A DNA stretch of 60,169 nucleotides, the filler included, from Hausera hauseri (taxonomy: Eukaryota): assembly GCA_046269625.1 (NCBI GenBank). It is 12 parts of 12 records of this genome, joined end to end, with 100 filler letters (N's around TTAATTAATTAA, not from the genome) between each part and the next. Parts side by side here need not be neighbours in the genome. Positions count along the whole stretch, not along the records: positions 25,205 to 30,057 come from JBJURY010414144.1; 11 more parts are not named here. One strand, written 5' to 3'. Positions 4,830 to 30,157 of this stretch are shown here, piece after piece (the stretch's first letter is position 1; each line of letters begins with the position of its first letter). Both the position numbers and the translations under genes were made by a program. The notes below the pieces were generated by a model. It worked only from the letters and a program-made list of their open reading frames with translations, was not told where the DNA came from and did not search any database.

Positions 4830-7450
4830 GGCCACGCCGTCAACGATGTGGTGAGACTTGAACGACTAAAGGATATCTTGAGATGGTTGATTTTCTTGGA
4901 GTTTTGTCTGAGTAAAAATTGGCGAAAAATTGACTGAACCGACTGATCTGGATAAAAAATCGGAAACTAGATTGTCAACAGTGAATATGTTTAATGTCGA
5001 AGTTAAACGTGGATAAATATGAAATTTGTCGTTCTTGTCGAGTTGAAGGGTGTTTTATTGCTATTATATTAATCAACGGTTTGTGATCAGTCTGTATAAC
5101 AAAATGATGAGCTATAAGTAAGTGAGAAAAATGTCTTAAAGCAAGAACTATTGCCAGCAGTTCCCGATAGAAAGTTGAATATCTAGTTTCTGGTGGCGTT
5201 AATTTTCGGGAAAAGAATTTTAGGGGCTGATTTTCGCCTTTATACAACTGGTGTAGTACGGCACCTACTGCGATGTTTGATGCATTTGTGGTCAAAATTA
5301 GCTCAGCGTCAGGCTTAGGAAATGCTAGTATTTCAATAGTCTTTAGTTCTTCGCATAGCCTATCAAACTTATTAACCACATGATTTTTTGGTGTTTTTTT
5401 TTCCTCCGCTTAAGTGTACAAAAGATGCCGTGAGTTCCGAACAATATAGGATATAATTGTGGACGAAATGCAAGATACCTAGAAAACTACGCATTTCTGT
5501 GGTTGTCTTAAGTAGTTGGTCGTTTTTAGGAGTCTCAACTCGATCAGGCTGAGGTGAATGTCCGCTTGAGGGCATAACATGTCCAAGAAAATTAACGCGT
5601 TTTTCGAAGATGTTACATTTTGCAAAATTTATCTTTAGGTTGAACTGATTAAGTCGTTGGAAGATAGATCGTATGTGTTCCTCGTGTTGTTTAATGGAAG
5701 AAGAAGCAACCAAGATATCGTAAATATATGGGTGTGAAAAAGGGAAGTCTGAAAGGATTGAGTCGACGTGTCGCTGAAAAGTCTGCGCAGCATTCCGGAG
5801 ACCGAAAAGCATGTACAAGTACTCATAAAGACCGAAAGGTGTGGTAATTGCAGTTTTCTCGACGTCTTCCGGTGCGACAGGAATTTGATGGTATGCTTTG
5901 GCCAAATAAATTGTTGAATAAACTGTAGTAGAATTAAGCCGATGTAATATGACTTTGATTAATGGTAAGGGATATGCATCCATTATGGTTAAAGTATTAA
6001 GCTGGCAGTAATCGCCGTATGGTCGGAAGGATCCATCATTTTTGGACAACGTGGAGAGGCGAAGACCAAGGGGATTTAGTTCTACGGACAATACCCGATT
6101 GTCCGAGTTCAAAATATTCCGCCTCTACTGCCTGCCTGCGACGCGATGACAATGGATGGACCTTTTGTCGAATTGGTCTTTGGTATCGTGTAATTATATA
6201 GTGGTAAATGCCGTTTACAGGGGTGATATTTCGATCTTTCTGAAGTATACGAGGACAAGAAGTATTGATGAATTGTTGTAAACGTACTGGTAGTTGCTGG
6301 AATATTGGAAGTGACGATGAACCGAGGTTGCTAGCAGTACTTGGTGAATGTTAATTGATAGTTGGTGGGGAATCGAGTGGAATTTGATGTAGGATGGTCG
6401 TGTCTGAGACCTTATTCGAGTAAGTGTTGATGTTTAATGATTTTACTGAAGATACAAGATCGTGAGCGTCGGCATTGAGCTGTGACTGACTATCGACATT
6501 GTTCTTTGACAGCTTACGAGGTAAAACGTGATAGTTACGAGAATTAAGAAGTGGTTTTGACTGTTTTAAGATTGACTGCCTACTTATTGTTGGATGTTCT
6601 GTCGTCGGGGGGGGGGCTGCCTATTTCTGTACTATAATCTTCAGGTGTATTTAATTTCAGACATCGTTGGTTACAATGGACTAGAAAGTTATTATACGAC
6701 AGGAAATCGGAGCCAAGTATAGCCGTCTGGACGTTAGCGACTGTAAACGTCCAATGAAATGGTGGGGAAAATTTTGGTAGAGTGAAAGATAATTTGCAAG
6801 TTCTGGAAATATAAATTGGTTGACCGGAGGCGGTGTATAACGGTTTTGTTTTAAGTGAAGAATGTTTAACTAGAAAAGAAAGTGATAGTAATATGATCGA
6901 TGCACCGGTATCAATGAGAAAGTCTATGGATTGAATGTTAGAAGTGAAGATAGCAGCTTTTAGTGTAAAGACTGCAAAAGAAATGTGGCGGCAAGAAGAA
7001 TTAGGTAAGCTGCCTTTGCCAGAATCTGCCGTGAATACTGGCAGCGAAATCAGTTTTTTGGATTGGTGAGTTTGTACGATTAATGTTAGAGAAACTGACA
7101 CGTATATCAGTGGTGTAGTTATGGTTAGTTTTATAGTGGCAGCCCGAAATACAATTCCGTGCATTTGATCAAAATTTTGCATAATTGATGCAAACAATGT
7201 TATCTGAGTGTAGATGCGAGGAATAATATTTACAGCCTAAACAGCATTTATTTGCTTTGTTATTAAATTTGTTTTGATAATAACATATAAATGACCGCGT
7301 TGGTGACGGTGTTCGATTTCTGGAAAGAGAGCGCGTTCGATGAGGTGAGGAAGCATTCCGTCGATGTAAGGAAAGGTCATTCAGCTTATCATTGATGGTG
7401 TTGATTGTATGTTGTTGGTGCAGCGGAATTTAACAGGCGATACTTCCATG
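4830..7450 (-). mobile_element. Ty3/Gypsy LTR retrotransposon, gag end-PR-RT-RNase H (degraded)
   Basis: Gag Cys motif CINYAKF*SNARNCISGC; protease FLIDTGAS; RT DAYPLP...KAYHQIPVAPEDVEKTAITTPFGLYEY...YIYDILVAS; RNase H TNASNIAVGAVL...RELLAI...TDHKPL. Confidence 0.95.
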
Positions 7451-24813: not shown

Positions 24814-26088
24814 TGAAATAAAATCTTTGAATTCTGGCCTTAATAAGATGTGATAATGAAGTATAGGTAGCCTGATAGAGTCAATAATAATAAACGATGG
24901 AAAACAATAAACTGATTATAATAGCAATAGAAGCATGAAAAGAATAAATAGAAGAATTAAATGAATTAATATTGATTTTAGGATGTGTTATATGCAAAGA
25001 ATCTCCGGAAGTTAACAATGGAAGAAAAAACTCATGTCCGCTATGTTATCTCGTCGAAAAGATGAAGCATCGGGAAGATCAGTTCGAGTGCGCATACTGC
25101 GGGGNNNNNNNNNNNNNNNNNNNNNNNNNNNNNNNNNNNNNNNNNNNNTTAATTAATTAANNNNNNNNNNNNNNNNNNNNNNNNNNNNNNNNNNNNNNNN
25201 NNNNATAAATTTTTATTTCTTATGTTTTTCTCATTAAAGGGGTGGGAAAACCGCTTTGTTCCGGGGTGGGAATAGTGAAACTCAATTGGCCCCAAAAATC
25301 CTTTGTTCCGGGATGGGAATAGTAAAACCCAATTGGCTCCAATGCTCTCTGATTGGTCCTCTACTCCTACTGGCTTACTTACTTCCCCATCATGATGTGT
25401 CCTCTTCTCATTCGCCAGTTTCCCATCCCCTCGATCACGTGGTCTCCTCCTATTAGCTTCCTTCCCTGGGGGGGGGGGGGTTTGGAGCCAAGTCCTCACA
25501 TCCAACTACTGTTGTACTTTATCGTAAACATATTCTGGATTTTGCGATATACAACTTTTGAGTCTCTTTCTTAAGTCATTTAGACTTCGTCTTAGAGTAC
25601 TTGTTGTTTGTTTAGGTGATTTGGCAGGTTTTTCATTATGAAGTCGTCGATTAGGAGGAATATAATTTACATGTTTTTCAATTCCTTATTTCCATTTGTT
25701 TTCCTGTCGTACCATGAAAATTCTACCTACTGGTTTTAGTAGAGCAGCTAATATTTTCCAGGTACATTTAGTTATGGCGTAAATTGAATATGCACCTACA
25801 CATGTCATGCATCCATTTTTAAGAATTACAAATCCATAATAAAATACTAGTATAGTGGAGGCTATATTACTAACCACTGAAAATGTCCAAAGACCTTTTT
25901 TATAATTCTTTCTTGGAGGTCAAGATCTAGTACACTTTGCCATCCTTTACTATAATCTCTAGATGATGTTCCACCCATTAAGACTGCATGTCCTAATCGA
26001 TTAAACTCCTGTTATCTTATTATAGTGAACATGATTTGTTTTATGAATGTATTTAACTCATTTGGGTTACATAATCTTACATTCGCTG

Positions 26089-26130
26089 TGTGGTGCCGCG
26101 ATGGCGGGCGCGTCTGGTTCTTCCGACGGA
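26089..26130 (+). mobile_element. Short LTR head (copy G)
   Basis: TGTGGTGCCGCGATGGCGGGCGCGTCTGGTTCTTCC resembles the PPT-preceded heads at 45589(+) and 34386(-), and the start plus end of the long head. Confidence 0.6.
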
Positions 26131-26666
26131 AAGATTTCGTCCATTGAACAATCCATCCAAAACAAACCTGTTCGGATCACTTCGAATTCAGAAAGAATAT
26201 TCAGCAGGAATTCCGGTGAAACTAAATAATGCCTTATGCAAACCCCGATGGTTCTTATACTGTAATTGTTCTAATCAAGTGGTATAAATATCGGCCAAAT
26301 CTTTCGTCTCTCAAACCATTGGACAAAATGAATTTGGAGTAAATGGAAGCGATTTACGTTACGGCATTTACCGTTTAAGAAAAGTGGAATTTATAGGTTG
26401 GATGACATCCTTAAAGAACTCTACACAGCACCATGGTTGGTTTTATTTACTTGTTTCAGCACAAGAAATTGTTGATTAGTTCATGTACCACAGATGTATT
26501 CAATTTCTGCTGCGAAACTCTGTTCCTAACTTAACTACATTTAATGATTTTGGATATTGCCGTGTTTCTGCCTTTAATTAAAATTTGTTAACATAGAATA
26601 CATTTTATAATTGATGATTGATAATTGATTACAATAACGTTTGAATAAATTTTTACATTACGACTT

Positions 26667-29600
26667 TTGATTTTGGGATTTTCTCAGATTATCGTTGATA
26701 TTCGCTTTGGAATTTATTTATCAACATTAAAACTGGTGTCAGAAGTATTTTTCATTGTGTGGTGCTTTTCGGCAGTTTACTTAATCTTATTCTTTGTTTC
26801 ACTGGTTTTGGGATATCATTCAGAAAAAAAGTTGAAGATGTTTATCATATTTTTGATTGTTTGCAGCGATATATTTGTGTTCAGTCATCCTATAGTATCA
26901 GTCATCATTCTACTCCATCCATCGTTGTTTTACAATTGCACATTGACGACAAAGATTTTACACAATGTTGGATTATATAATTACTTTTCCATGAAGTACT
27001 ACCATATTATTCGTCTCATATTGCCGGATGTCTACGTATTTTTGGTATCCATTTTTGTGCTCATTTTTCTACACAGCTCGTCTACGGAGATGGACAGTTT
27101 CGAGAATATGCGCAACAAAATTCTGGATTCTTGGCTTTATCAAAGAATAAAAATCATTTTTACTCAACTTCTAATATTATTCGTCAGTATATTATCTCCT
27201 TCATTTACGAATTTCACCTATTTCTTCATGTTCATTCTCGTCGATACAATGTGGGCCGGCGGATTGCGAATTACATCACGATGTCTTTTGTCTATACGAA
27301 CATTCATCATGACCTATTTGGCGATCAATATTAGTTTAATTTATGCTGTACAGTTTGAATATTTTCGAGAATGGTTTCCAGACAATAAATTACATTCAAG
27401 ACTACTCGGGATTTATCATTTCGTCGAATTCCCATGTAGAATTAAGAATGAATTTAATGTTTTACGTCAAAGGATTTACGATTTCCTTGTTCCGCCGATT
27501 TTGGTTATATTGTACTACATTCATTCATTCGATAGTGGTGTATATTTTGATACGAAAACATTGGAGAACCTTGCCATAATGCCACAGTTTTTGAAACGCA
27601 GAGGAGCCCACAGTTATATCAATTCCAGCAACGAAACAAAATCAGAAATCATTAATGTTAGTCGTCCATTTACGTGGAGCATAATAAATTCAGTTATCAG
27701 AAACAGCTATATATTATCATTTATCGCCATGATGGTATGGAGTGTTGCATATACATCGTGGTTAACGTTCTTGTTTATTTTCACCGCATGTATTCTATGG
27801 TTAATGCCAGACGCAAGAAAGGCTTGTTTAATGTGCAGTCCCGCCATAGTAGCATATGGGATTGCAATGAACTTGGCATTTTATCTTTCAAACATAAACA
27901 TACGTGACTTAATCAATTTAATTTTGTCCCGTTTTTCATATTTGCAATTGACAACCTTTCAGTCGGATATTCCATTTGTGCCACTCTTGCTTTCGTTTGT
28001 ATATTTGATAATATTCTGGATGACTCTAAAAATTCTAGACAAAGAAAGAGAACGGAAGTTAGAAGCTATGGTACCCGGAGCTCCACAGTTTGAAGATAAC
28101 AAACTGTACAAATTATATGTGGTATTCATACGCTACGTTTGTACCAAATATTGGCTGGTTGTGTGCTGTATAAGCTTACTGATGGAATCATTACAGAAAA
28201 CAACGAACGCTATATTTATCATCTATTTCATACTCATTACATACTTTTTATATTTCTTTATGTTACAATATAATGTGTGGAGAAAGCAACTCTACGCATT
28301 CCTATGGGTTGTCGTGGGTTATTCACTCATAACCGTATTCGCAATATATACATTCCACTTCAAAATCTTCCGAGATTTATGGATTAAACTGGAATATATA
28401 TCTGGAATTAAACTTAGTGACATTGGCTTGAATTCGTATCCTCCTCACGATTTATTCGAAGCTCTAATGACTCCCGTTTCGCTTCTTGTTATTACTATAA
28501 TACAAGTGCGTTATTTTCATCAAGTCTTTATGAAAATAATTTCATTTGATACCAGAGACGGAGGAAAACGAGAATCACCATACAGACTTAAAATAACAGC
28601 ATCAACACTTTCAGCGTATGATCAAAACTTTGTTGTTTCAACATTTCATATATTGTTGGCCCGTATGCAAAGATCGAAAGGTCCTCAAGAATGGAACTAC
28701 TTTGTATCAGACGTGAACGCAGCATTCGTTATAATAGCAAGTAAAATATCAGTTTACATCAGGATTTTGGGTGATAAATTTTGGATATTTCTTGAAATCC
28801 ACATAACAAAATTCGTTATTTTTTTAATATCCTACGTAATAACAAATGATGTCAATGATTATCATTTTGACTATGCTCTTTTGGTTGCTTTACTCTTTCC
28901 CATTACACGTTTACATAAGATATTCATTTTACTGTTGTATACGCTTTTGGTAGTACAAATGTTGTCGCGAATGATCTTTCAACTTACTTTTGTAAATGAT
29001 GAGCAGTGGATTGTTGACTGCAACATTAAGAATATATTTTCTGTAAATCGCAGTACGAGAAATATGAATCTTGCAGTATATTTCGGATACACCAAATTCC
29101 ATAATTTCAGATCATCCAACTGGTTTATAACATTCAATATAATTCTATGTGCGTTTTGGTTTGTTTTACTGTACCATCAACACAGGAGAGAAACATGGCC
29201 AAGAGAAAAGAGCGTTTTGTTTCCTGAAGCCAGCTGCAAAAATGCCAACGATTCAGTGGTCAATATTTTAAAACTTACATTGAATTATATTTTTTACAAA
29301 ATAGGCTTGGAGTTATGCTTAATAATGACTGTTATTGATGCATATATACGACTCGATGCCATCTCCATGTTTTACCTAGTATTACTGTTACTATATCTTC
29401 CCTCATCTAGATTATTATGTTCACAACTTTGGCCAATATACTTAGTAATTGTCTGTTTGCTCATACCAATCCAGTATATGATTTGTGTTGGTTATTTTCC
29501 AGGATTTTGCAAAGACTATATGGTAATCACAAACCAGAACTTGGTCAAATGGCCTTTTCTTCCAAATTATGAAATTCCTCTAGAATCCAAAAAAATATTC

Positions 29601-29900
29601 GTCGATGTACTTCTCCTTGTCTTCATTTGTTGTCAGTACCACGTATTTCGTATTGAAAAACAATCATTGGACTACAAAGGTGGACGAAACATTCCAACCT
29701 TAGTCAACGATATGCCCGATATTGAAAAGAAGGATTTCACGGTTGCTGAAGTATCTGAGATATCAGACACCGTCCAGTGGGTGCCTGCAGAAGAGAAGTT
29801 TTTAAACACTTACAGCGAAGAATCAAAAGATGACTTGTCGGTATCAAAAGGTAATCATGATGATTTCTATCAATTTGATCTCAGTCCAATAAATTCTCTG
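26667..29900 (+). CDS. piezo: Intronless Piezo mechanosensitive channel N-terminal half (truncated, probable retrocopy; no pore domain)
   Basis: Multi-TM ORF with Piezo signatures NC...ILHNVGL..IIRLILPDV, SFIAMMVWSVAYTSWLTF, FWIFLEIHITK, FYKIGLELCL, LWPIY..QYMICVGYFPGFC, DVLLLVFICCQYHVFRIE. About 1,080 codons with no intron or stop. Confidence 0.9.
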
Positions 29901-29902
29901 GT

Positions 29903-29952
29903 TGGGGAACCGAGCGTGCCCGCCCCCGCTGCGCCGCGTCACTTATCCCTGT
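29903..29952 (-). mobile_element. Inverted short LTR head (copy H) with PPT-like AGGGATAAGTGA
   Basis: Reverse complement ACAGGGATAAGTGA-CGCGGCGCAGCGGGGGCGGGCACGCTCGGTTCCCC aligns with ACAGGGGGTGA-TGTGGTGCTGCGGTGCTGGACACAACTCGTCTTCCC at 45578-45624. Confidence 0.55.
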
Positions 29953-30157
29953 TAATTTTTTTTAATAACATGCACATCAGTACCTTTTATGCTCCACACA
30001 CGGGTACCTTGCATTGTCTCTACTCACATCTAGTCTCTCTCCTCCACTCGTCTGAATNNNNNNNNNNNNNNNNNNNNNNNNNNNNNNNNNNNNNNNNNNN
30101 NTTAATTAATTAANNNNNNNNNNNNNNNNNNNNNNNNNNNNNNNNNNNNNNNNNNNN

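Follow-up and report, generated by a model that had tools for sequence, protein, structure and literature searches.

How does an uninterrupted open reading frame (ORF) for the front part of a Piezo protein, a family in which human PIEZO1 is encoded by 51 exons (PMC8526690), come to lie between repeats in an assembly deposited as Hausera hauseri (GCA_046269625.1)? The window in which it was found is a stretch of 60,169 nucleotides, filler included, made of 12 parts of 12 records of that assembly, and the locus occupies the part taken from JBJURY010414144.1 (positions 25205–30057 along the window). This piece is the genomic sequence considered, and all results given here are confined to this span. 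It contains a real coding block for membrane helices 1–24 of a flatworm Piezo, which is followed by a copy of a dispersed repeat that we call R. With modest confidence, we favor the reading that positions 26688–29728 belong to the native, single-copy Piezo gene of the animal, as its large first coding exon, and were recently broken by R. A first-pass annotation had proposed another origin, i.e., a young retrocopy bracketed by two GC-rich strings (the left and right "heads", near 26089 and 29940) taken for inverted long terminal repeat (LTR) ends.

The Piezo coding block and its 5′ end

26688..29728, + strand: Piezo coding block of 1,013 codons, from the N-terminus to transmembrane helix 24 (TM24), in six four-helix blade units; Pfam, HMMER and structure matches

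On the plus strand, the frame is free of stops from 26649, directly after a TAA at 26646–26648, to 30056, and its 1,136 codons are ended by the edge of the piece. The codons of 26688–29728 contain zero stops and zero frameshifts in DNA of 33% GC. Across the ORF, the GC content is 27–37%, increasing to 40–44% where the ORF nears the edge of the piece, and the leftmost part of the piece has 53%. The Pfam family Piezo_TM1-24 (PF24871) was matched with 307.8 bits against a cut-off of 28.8 (E 2.1e-91), and HMMER against 1.84 billion representatives returned 527 Piezo relatives (236 at E ≤ 1e-10), the top one with 33% identity and an E-value of 1.3e-128, while nothing above 33% identity was seen in the protein libraries searched. 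Solved Piezo structures were also matched (E 6e-64), the aligned part beginning near residue 30 of 9W7X and extending to its residue 1121, or to residue 1116 in mouse Piezo1. This sequence evidence is decisive for the fold. A hydropathy scan gave 26 partly overlapping peaks, corresponding to ~22–24 distinct hydrophobic segments between nucleotides 26712 and 29630, and zero in the tail that follows the block. The block agrees with the Piezo plan, in which TM25 is preceded by six units of four helices, about 24 transmembrane helices in all.

The blade is shared with the solved Piezos (mouse Piezo1 5Z10/6B3R, mouse Piezo2 6KG7, 9W7X), including the motifs SY..(x)MMxWS..SW and YFH, although the block comprises only TM1–24 within the piece and has 31–33% identity to any known Piezo. 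An alignment with 40 long homologues has 104 columns of at least 80% identity within the covered part; 79 of these are kept, with most changes being conservative, and none of the 42 conserved columns past TM24 is present in the piece. The block ends five codons past NDMPDI (29706–29723), which aligns with the family motif NPxPDF before TM25, and the helix that all homologues have after NPxPDF is missing or displaced here, as seen in an alignment with 11 homologues. Homology stops at 29728, and none of TM25–38, the beam, the anchor, the outer helix, the cap, or the inner and pore helices lies within the piece. The first-pass annotation had described an uninterrupted Piezo N-terminal coding block, a blade lacking TM25–38, beam, cap and pore, and an absence of introns unusual for the family; the matches above bear out the first two within this piece, and the third agrees with 3.04 kb without an intron here against the 51 exons of human PIEZO1 (PMC8526690).

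The named matches are all Piezo proteins, of which the trematodes Calicophoron daubneyi and Heterobilharzia americana rank first, followed by molluscs, a nemertean and hemichordates. A quick maximum-likelihood tree groups the block protein as sister to the two trematode Piezos (C. daubneyi A0AAV2T2S1, 3,243 aa; H. americana CAH8635442.1, 3,087 aa; 31–33% identity) with an SH-aLRT of 100. These are its closest relatives both by score and by tree, and both the N-terminus and the motif before TM25 align with theirs. In contrast to the trematode proteins, the block protein has an AT-biased amino-acid make-up and a branch about six times longer (2.41 against 0.36–0.40). Since the tree places the protein as sister to trematode Piezos, it most likely comes from a flatworm that is not one of the sampled trematodes, with long-branch effects being possible.

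26665..26687, + strand: T-rich tract ending in CAG, a candidate 3′ splice acceptor (cis or spliced-leader trans), in phase 0 with the Piezo frame; splicing predicted
26838..26840, + strand: first in-frame ATG; a start here would lose TM1
26435..26443, + strand: candidate end of a first mini-exon, gcaccATGg and then GT (ATG/GTTGGT), as read from the sequence

The 5′ end of the block has the look of an exon entry. Directly before ATT ATC GTT at 26688 the sequence is ttttgattttgggattttctcag, and the AG of the acceptor-like tttctcag/ATT at 26687/26688 is the sole AG between 26600 and 26740. Homologues align from their first residues, and their Met falls at about 26688–26700, within a few codons of 26688; an in-frame ATG is absent from 26649–26837. 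The database Piezos P0006 and P0022 begin at the position aligned to the ATG at 26838. Judging from these letters, we infer a 3′ splice acceptor of phase 0 at 26687/26688. The AUG would then be supplied either by an upstream mini-exon or by a flatworm spliced leader (SL), and both fit equally well. For the former, the ATG at 26435 lies in a strong initiation context within AT-rich DNA, in phase and 250 nt upstream of the acceptor-like site, and joining 26437 to 26688 would give M-IIVDIRFG... in frame across a 250-nt intron. For the latter, PMC12582326, citing Cheng et al. 2006, states that all reported spliced leaders of parasitic flatworms end in AUG and are able to donate the start codon. 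The block resembles such trans-spliced messages in that its frame begins ATG-less, right after an acceptor-like site and at the Met position of the family. An SL gene is absent from the piece, in which a cis mini-exon is an equally good account. This 5′ end does not look like that of a processed copy, as it contains neither a 5′ untranslated region (UTR) plus ATG nor a copy of a spliced leader.

Copy number was read from the contigs of four public runs (X1–X4), aligned to the piece at at least 85% identity, an alignment whose filters omit some records. In X1, the best-matching run, with 85% of the words of the stretch present, the bins of 26663–29578 sum to depths of 50–93. The block is taken as single-copy because one contig (depth 50.8) accounts for all of the X1 depth in the bins of 26987–27796; no other contig with at least 85% identity was seen there. 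Selection probably acted on the block until very recently, since an unconstrained 3-kb copy with a parent diverged by more than 15%, at 33% GC, would have gained many stops, and none is present.

The four runs all date from 2024, come from four studies under four organism labels, and carry the stretch or near-identical parts of it, with a single-copy depth of 50–90 in X1 against ~3–8 in X2–X4. The presence of the stretch in four differently labeled runs would fit one flatworm species living as a guest or parasite in the samples of other animals. The nearest relative, at 33% identity, is saturated for a dN/dS comparison, and the runs differ from the piece at a handful of ORF sites, too few for a selection test, of which four are shown, one synonymous and three replacements. 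These are, in X1, T>C (Phe>Ser) at 26752 and T>G (Ile>Met) at 26756, found together in one variant contig of depth 42, a synonymous C>T at 27260, and G>C (Gly>Ala) at 29683. Two low-depth X1 contigs (depths 5 and 16) each omit 126 nt, i.e., 42 codons in frame (27959 to 28086 and 28045 to 28172), which may represent a minor variant or come from a relative present in the sample. Contigs of X3 and X4 at 27595, 28011, 28852–28886 and 29173 show near-perfect short matches to the ORF followed by 170–255 unlike letters, without GT/AG at the breaks; a different context, chimeric contigs or a rearranged copy are possible.

The junction with the dispersed repeat R

29729..30057, + strand: copy of the dispersed repeat R, left-truncated at 29728/29729 and exiting the piece; recognized by depth and by the letters of other copies
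29904..29940, − strand: right GC-rich head, inside R, translated as VGEPSVPAPAAPR in the open frame

The right boundary of the Piezo homology coincides with a sharp change in copy number. Over 29741–30057, summed depth in X1 rises to 5,100–6,500, against 50–93 for the ORF, and a 973-nt contig of X4 covers 29729–30057 unbroken with 5 differences. The R copies diverge by ~1–3% from the one in the piece, and the other copies, seen as loose ends in X1 and X2, have different, mutually agreeing letters to the left of 29729; longer contigs of X3 and X4 likewise extend leftwards past this position. With 31 matching letters required on each side for a contig to bridge the junction, an X2 contig (29171–29758, depth 6) reaches 30 nt beyond it, and an X1 contig (28774–29737, depth 87) falls short of the criterion, as it continues for 9 nt and then has 20 letters unlike the piece. 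This mismatch (29737–29757) could come from an R copy of variant sequence, or the junction could have a second allele. The GT dinucleotides within 29690–29760 are limited to 29703, 29742 and 29751, and because GT is absent at the junction itself we take it as a breakpoint and not as a splice donor.

The tail beyond the junction (29730–30056, 109 codons) is open in the Piezo frame, as happens in 0.3% of dinucleotide shuffles, and its base periodicity is coding-like, with G at 0.29 in codon position 1 against 0.09 in position 2. The loose ends of other R copies supply ten codons upstream of the junction, and these too contain no stop in the Piezo frame. Since these copies are open too, the open frame of the tail is better seen as a property of R than as the result of selection at this locus. 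R itself looks like coding sequence, and its joining in frame looks like a modest coincidence. The tail found no relatives in Pfam, in a search of 5.8 billion proteins or in the ESM Atlas, where it has a low recognition score. Pfam on ten open frames of the tail and flanks returned no transposon protein, and neither an exact 30-nt pattern nor a protein-guided scan detected R copies or relatives of the gene in JGI metagenomes.

These observations alter the right end as it was first described. The ORF had been said to end at the right head, but no stop occurs and the frame crosses the head to the edge of the piece, whereas the Piezo homology ends ~175 nt before the head, where R begins. The same annotation had the protein skip ahead to a later Piezo region (NHDDFYQF resembling HSGDY.F). 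The tail as a later Piezo segment was rejected, with BLASTP against two full-length Piezos (P0001 and P0004) giving E ≥ 0.66 and the best short match falling elsewhere.

Based on the block, its 5′ end and the junction, we propose the following scheme for a native Piezo exon. The exon would be entered through the 3′ acceptor tttctcag/ATT at 26687/26688, with the initiator AUG coming from upstream, either from the mini-exon ending in ATG (26435) or from a spliced leader ending in AUG, and would encode blade helices TM1–24. A young, left-truncated copy of the coding-like R would have broken the exon at 29728/29729, by chance in the same frame; because this R copy lies in the Piezo frame, the ORF stays open to the edge of the piece. 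The rest of Piezo would lie beyond the piece. Both the insertion of R, as opposed to a relocation of the Piezo part, and the position of the remaining Piezo are presumed in this scheme.

Several points weigh against this scheme. The very long branch (2.41 against 0.36–0.40) could also mean a divergent paralogue, and the absence of a second copy depends on the contigs of one run, with filters that omit records. We found no precedent for an uninterrupted 3-kb Piezo exon, which is also how a cDNA-derived copy would look. When a gene is constrained, one would not expect a repeat within its coding exon, except where the repeat is very recent, is removed by splicing or is tolerated, and a coding-like repeat would join in frame by chance in, at best, 1 case in 6. 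As the piece ends at 30057, TM25–38 at this locus are only presumed. No RNA run containing the stretch was found, and the acceptor and any transcript stand as candidates.

Alternative origins of the block

A captured or chimeric retrocopy is an unlikely alternative, although several features are shared with it. Here, reverse transcriptase working on R RNA would have switched template to Piezo mRNA toward the 5′ end, or an LTR element would have captured a piece of the mRNA, either of which would leave a truncated repeat attached to a fragment of Piezo that has the blade only and no introns. Template-switch chimeras and LTR-mediated retroposition are known in animals. As in processed retrocopies, LTR retroposition and chimeras made by long interspersed nuclear elements (LINEs), the block is intron-free (1,013 codons against the 51 exons noted above), it directly abuts a left-truncated repeat in the same orientation, and the patchy similarity at the breakpoint (GAAAAG against GTAAGG) is compatible with a microhomology join. 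Unlike such copies, however, it has no parent in sight: the R copies have diverged by only ~1–3% and a young event should show its parent, yet no second copy at 85% identity or more was seen among the X1 contigs (26987–27796), which argues against a young retrocopy as first proposed. The 5′ end also differs from that of a message, with a T-rich tract and the sole AG placed exactly at the protein N-terminus where a 5′UTR plus ATG, or an SL copy, would be expected. Poly(A) is absent, the Piezo part is cut internally at 29728 against R, and a matching LTR pair is lacking, as the heads are not demonstrably homologous. The DNA from the left head to the ORF (26177–26662) has a summed X1 depth of ~140–280, far under that of the repeats on either side. 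LINE-made copies usually retain the 3′ part of the message, whereas the block holds the 5′ part.

There is likewise a small chance that the gene is intact, with R retained in the mature message as an insert in the TM24–TM25 loop, or spliced out from an internal donor, and with Piezo resuming beyond the piece. Candidate donors within R are GAA/GTATCT (29750/29751) and AAG/GTAATC (29850/29851). The Piezo part shows no decay, the junction was found in two differently labeled runs, and flatworm Piezos are long (3,087–3,243 aa), so extra loop sequence would be tolerated. The frame is open through all 109 visible R codons, with the shuffle frequency and the periodicity given above, but the other R copies are open in this frame as well, which makes it a property of R. 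The tail is without relatives and poorly recognized by the Atlas, and the conserved helix after NPxPDF is displaced.

We consider it very unlikely that the locus makes a blade-only Piezo, in which TM1–24 plus a repeat-encoded tail of at least 109 residues would be expressed through the block's own 5′ intron or SL acceptor and act as a modulator or dominant-negative of the full-length Piezo in the flatworm, the repeat-driven truncation having since been kept.

26089..26170, + strand: short repeat with the left GC-rich head (26089–26124) at its left edge, ~520–600 bp upstream of the acceptor-like site

Still less probable is a mobile unit of the terminal inverted repeat (TIR) or double-LTR type, with inverted ends at 26089 and about 29940–29952 and the Piezo fragment as cargo. 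The two GC-rich strings are where the first-pass annotation placed them, both within repeated DNA, and the left one does sit at a repeat edge, as an X1 contig begins at 26090 and X1 depth goes from ~130–150 at 25996–26026 to 1,202 at 26139–26146 and back to ~120–340 at 26255–26275 (2,212 for the bin 26015–26176); a copy in X3 is unlike the piece after 26167. The inverted LTR heads themselves did not withstand alignment. The ungapped inverted match between them is 72% over 29 nt, and the gapped one is ~70% over 46 nt with a score of 15, a weak match of GC-rich islands in AT-rich DNA that core shuffles reach in 0.2% of trials. Block shuffles of the pair with 360-nt flanks gave a borderline p of 0.046. 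With BLAST-like scoring, the pair was not reported, and over the 150 nt inward of the heads the alignment was no better than shuffles (z ~1.3), so that a proper alignment leaves only the core match, with nothing significant inward. Two X1 contigs depart from the piece after 29950, as a terminus there would predict, but the right head lies ~175 nt inside R, depth is high on both sides of it and to the right of 29950, and the X4 contig spans 29729–30057, so it is internal to a longer repeat. The cargo, moreover, is single-copy against two multi-copy ends. No flanking duplication was seen by eye (CGCTG left of 26089, CTTATC right of 29940), and the folding of the heads is no better than that of shuffles, without unusual hairpins. 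An LTR pair or TIR ends were accordingly rejected, as the ends are not homologous over their length, the right head is not a terminus, and the flanking bases differ. No mobile unit is delimited by the two heads, the left one being the edge of a different, short repeat.

An assembly artefact, in which a contig end was wrongly extended into the repeat while the Piezo exon truly continues, is just as improbable: the piece is bounded by repeats on both sides, as short contigs are, and the junction-crossing X1 contig has its 20 unlike letters after 29737, but the X1 and X2 contigs pass the junction by 9 and 30 nt at depths of 87 and 6 and stop about where the transition from unique to repeat is expected for 31-letter words, a support that is only partly independent since one run is possibly the assembly's own source.

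Flanking DNA and implications for flatworm Piezo

25205..25528, no strand assigned: very high-copy repeat outside the Piezo unit, with an X1 depth of 23,000–142,000

The left end of the piece consists of repeated DNA. The repeat of 25205–25528 contains two 47-nt tandem units (25247–25340, direct repeat D1, 85% identical), each with CAATTGG, and a run of 13 G at 25468–25480. It is followed by a moderately repeated region (25529–26011), whose depth falls rightwards from ~2,800 to ~90 and whose minus-strand open stretches of 49–77 codons are without significant Pfam match; this region may be the decayed interior of a mobile element. In the piece, Rfam gave nothing above threshold (one sub-threshold match of 19 bits against a gathering score of 62, E 0.96), ARAGORN found no tRNA, and no tandem arrays of note were seen. 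The ~540 bp of coding-like DNA that had been claimed between the left head and the ORF could not be recovered, as the longest stop-free stretch within 26089–26667 is 65 codons against 63 ± 15 in shuffled sequence (p 0.39), with no Pfam match.

A new kind of gene-carrying mobile unit is not supported by the present evidence. If the reading as a native exon broken by R is true, the locus would represent the Piezo gene of a flatworm lineage that evolves fast and has been sampled poorly, a gene in which ~40% of the coding sequence (1,013 codons of a typical Piezo of ~2,500 aa) is contained in one exon, and it would be a strong case of multiple intron loss when compared with the 51 exons of the human gene. 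The locus may also exemplify a start codon that is supplied from outside the exon, by a spliced leader or a mini-exon. Interrupted in frame by a young repeat, the locus would be either a channel gene that has only just been disabled or a Piezo that naturally consists of the blade alone.

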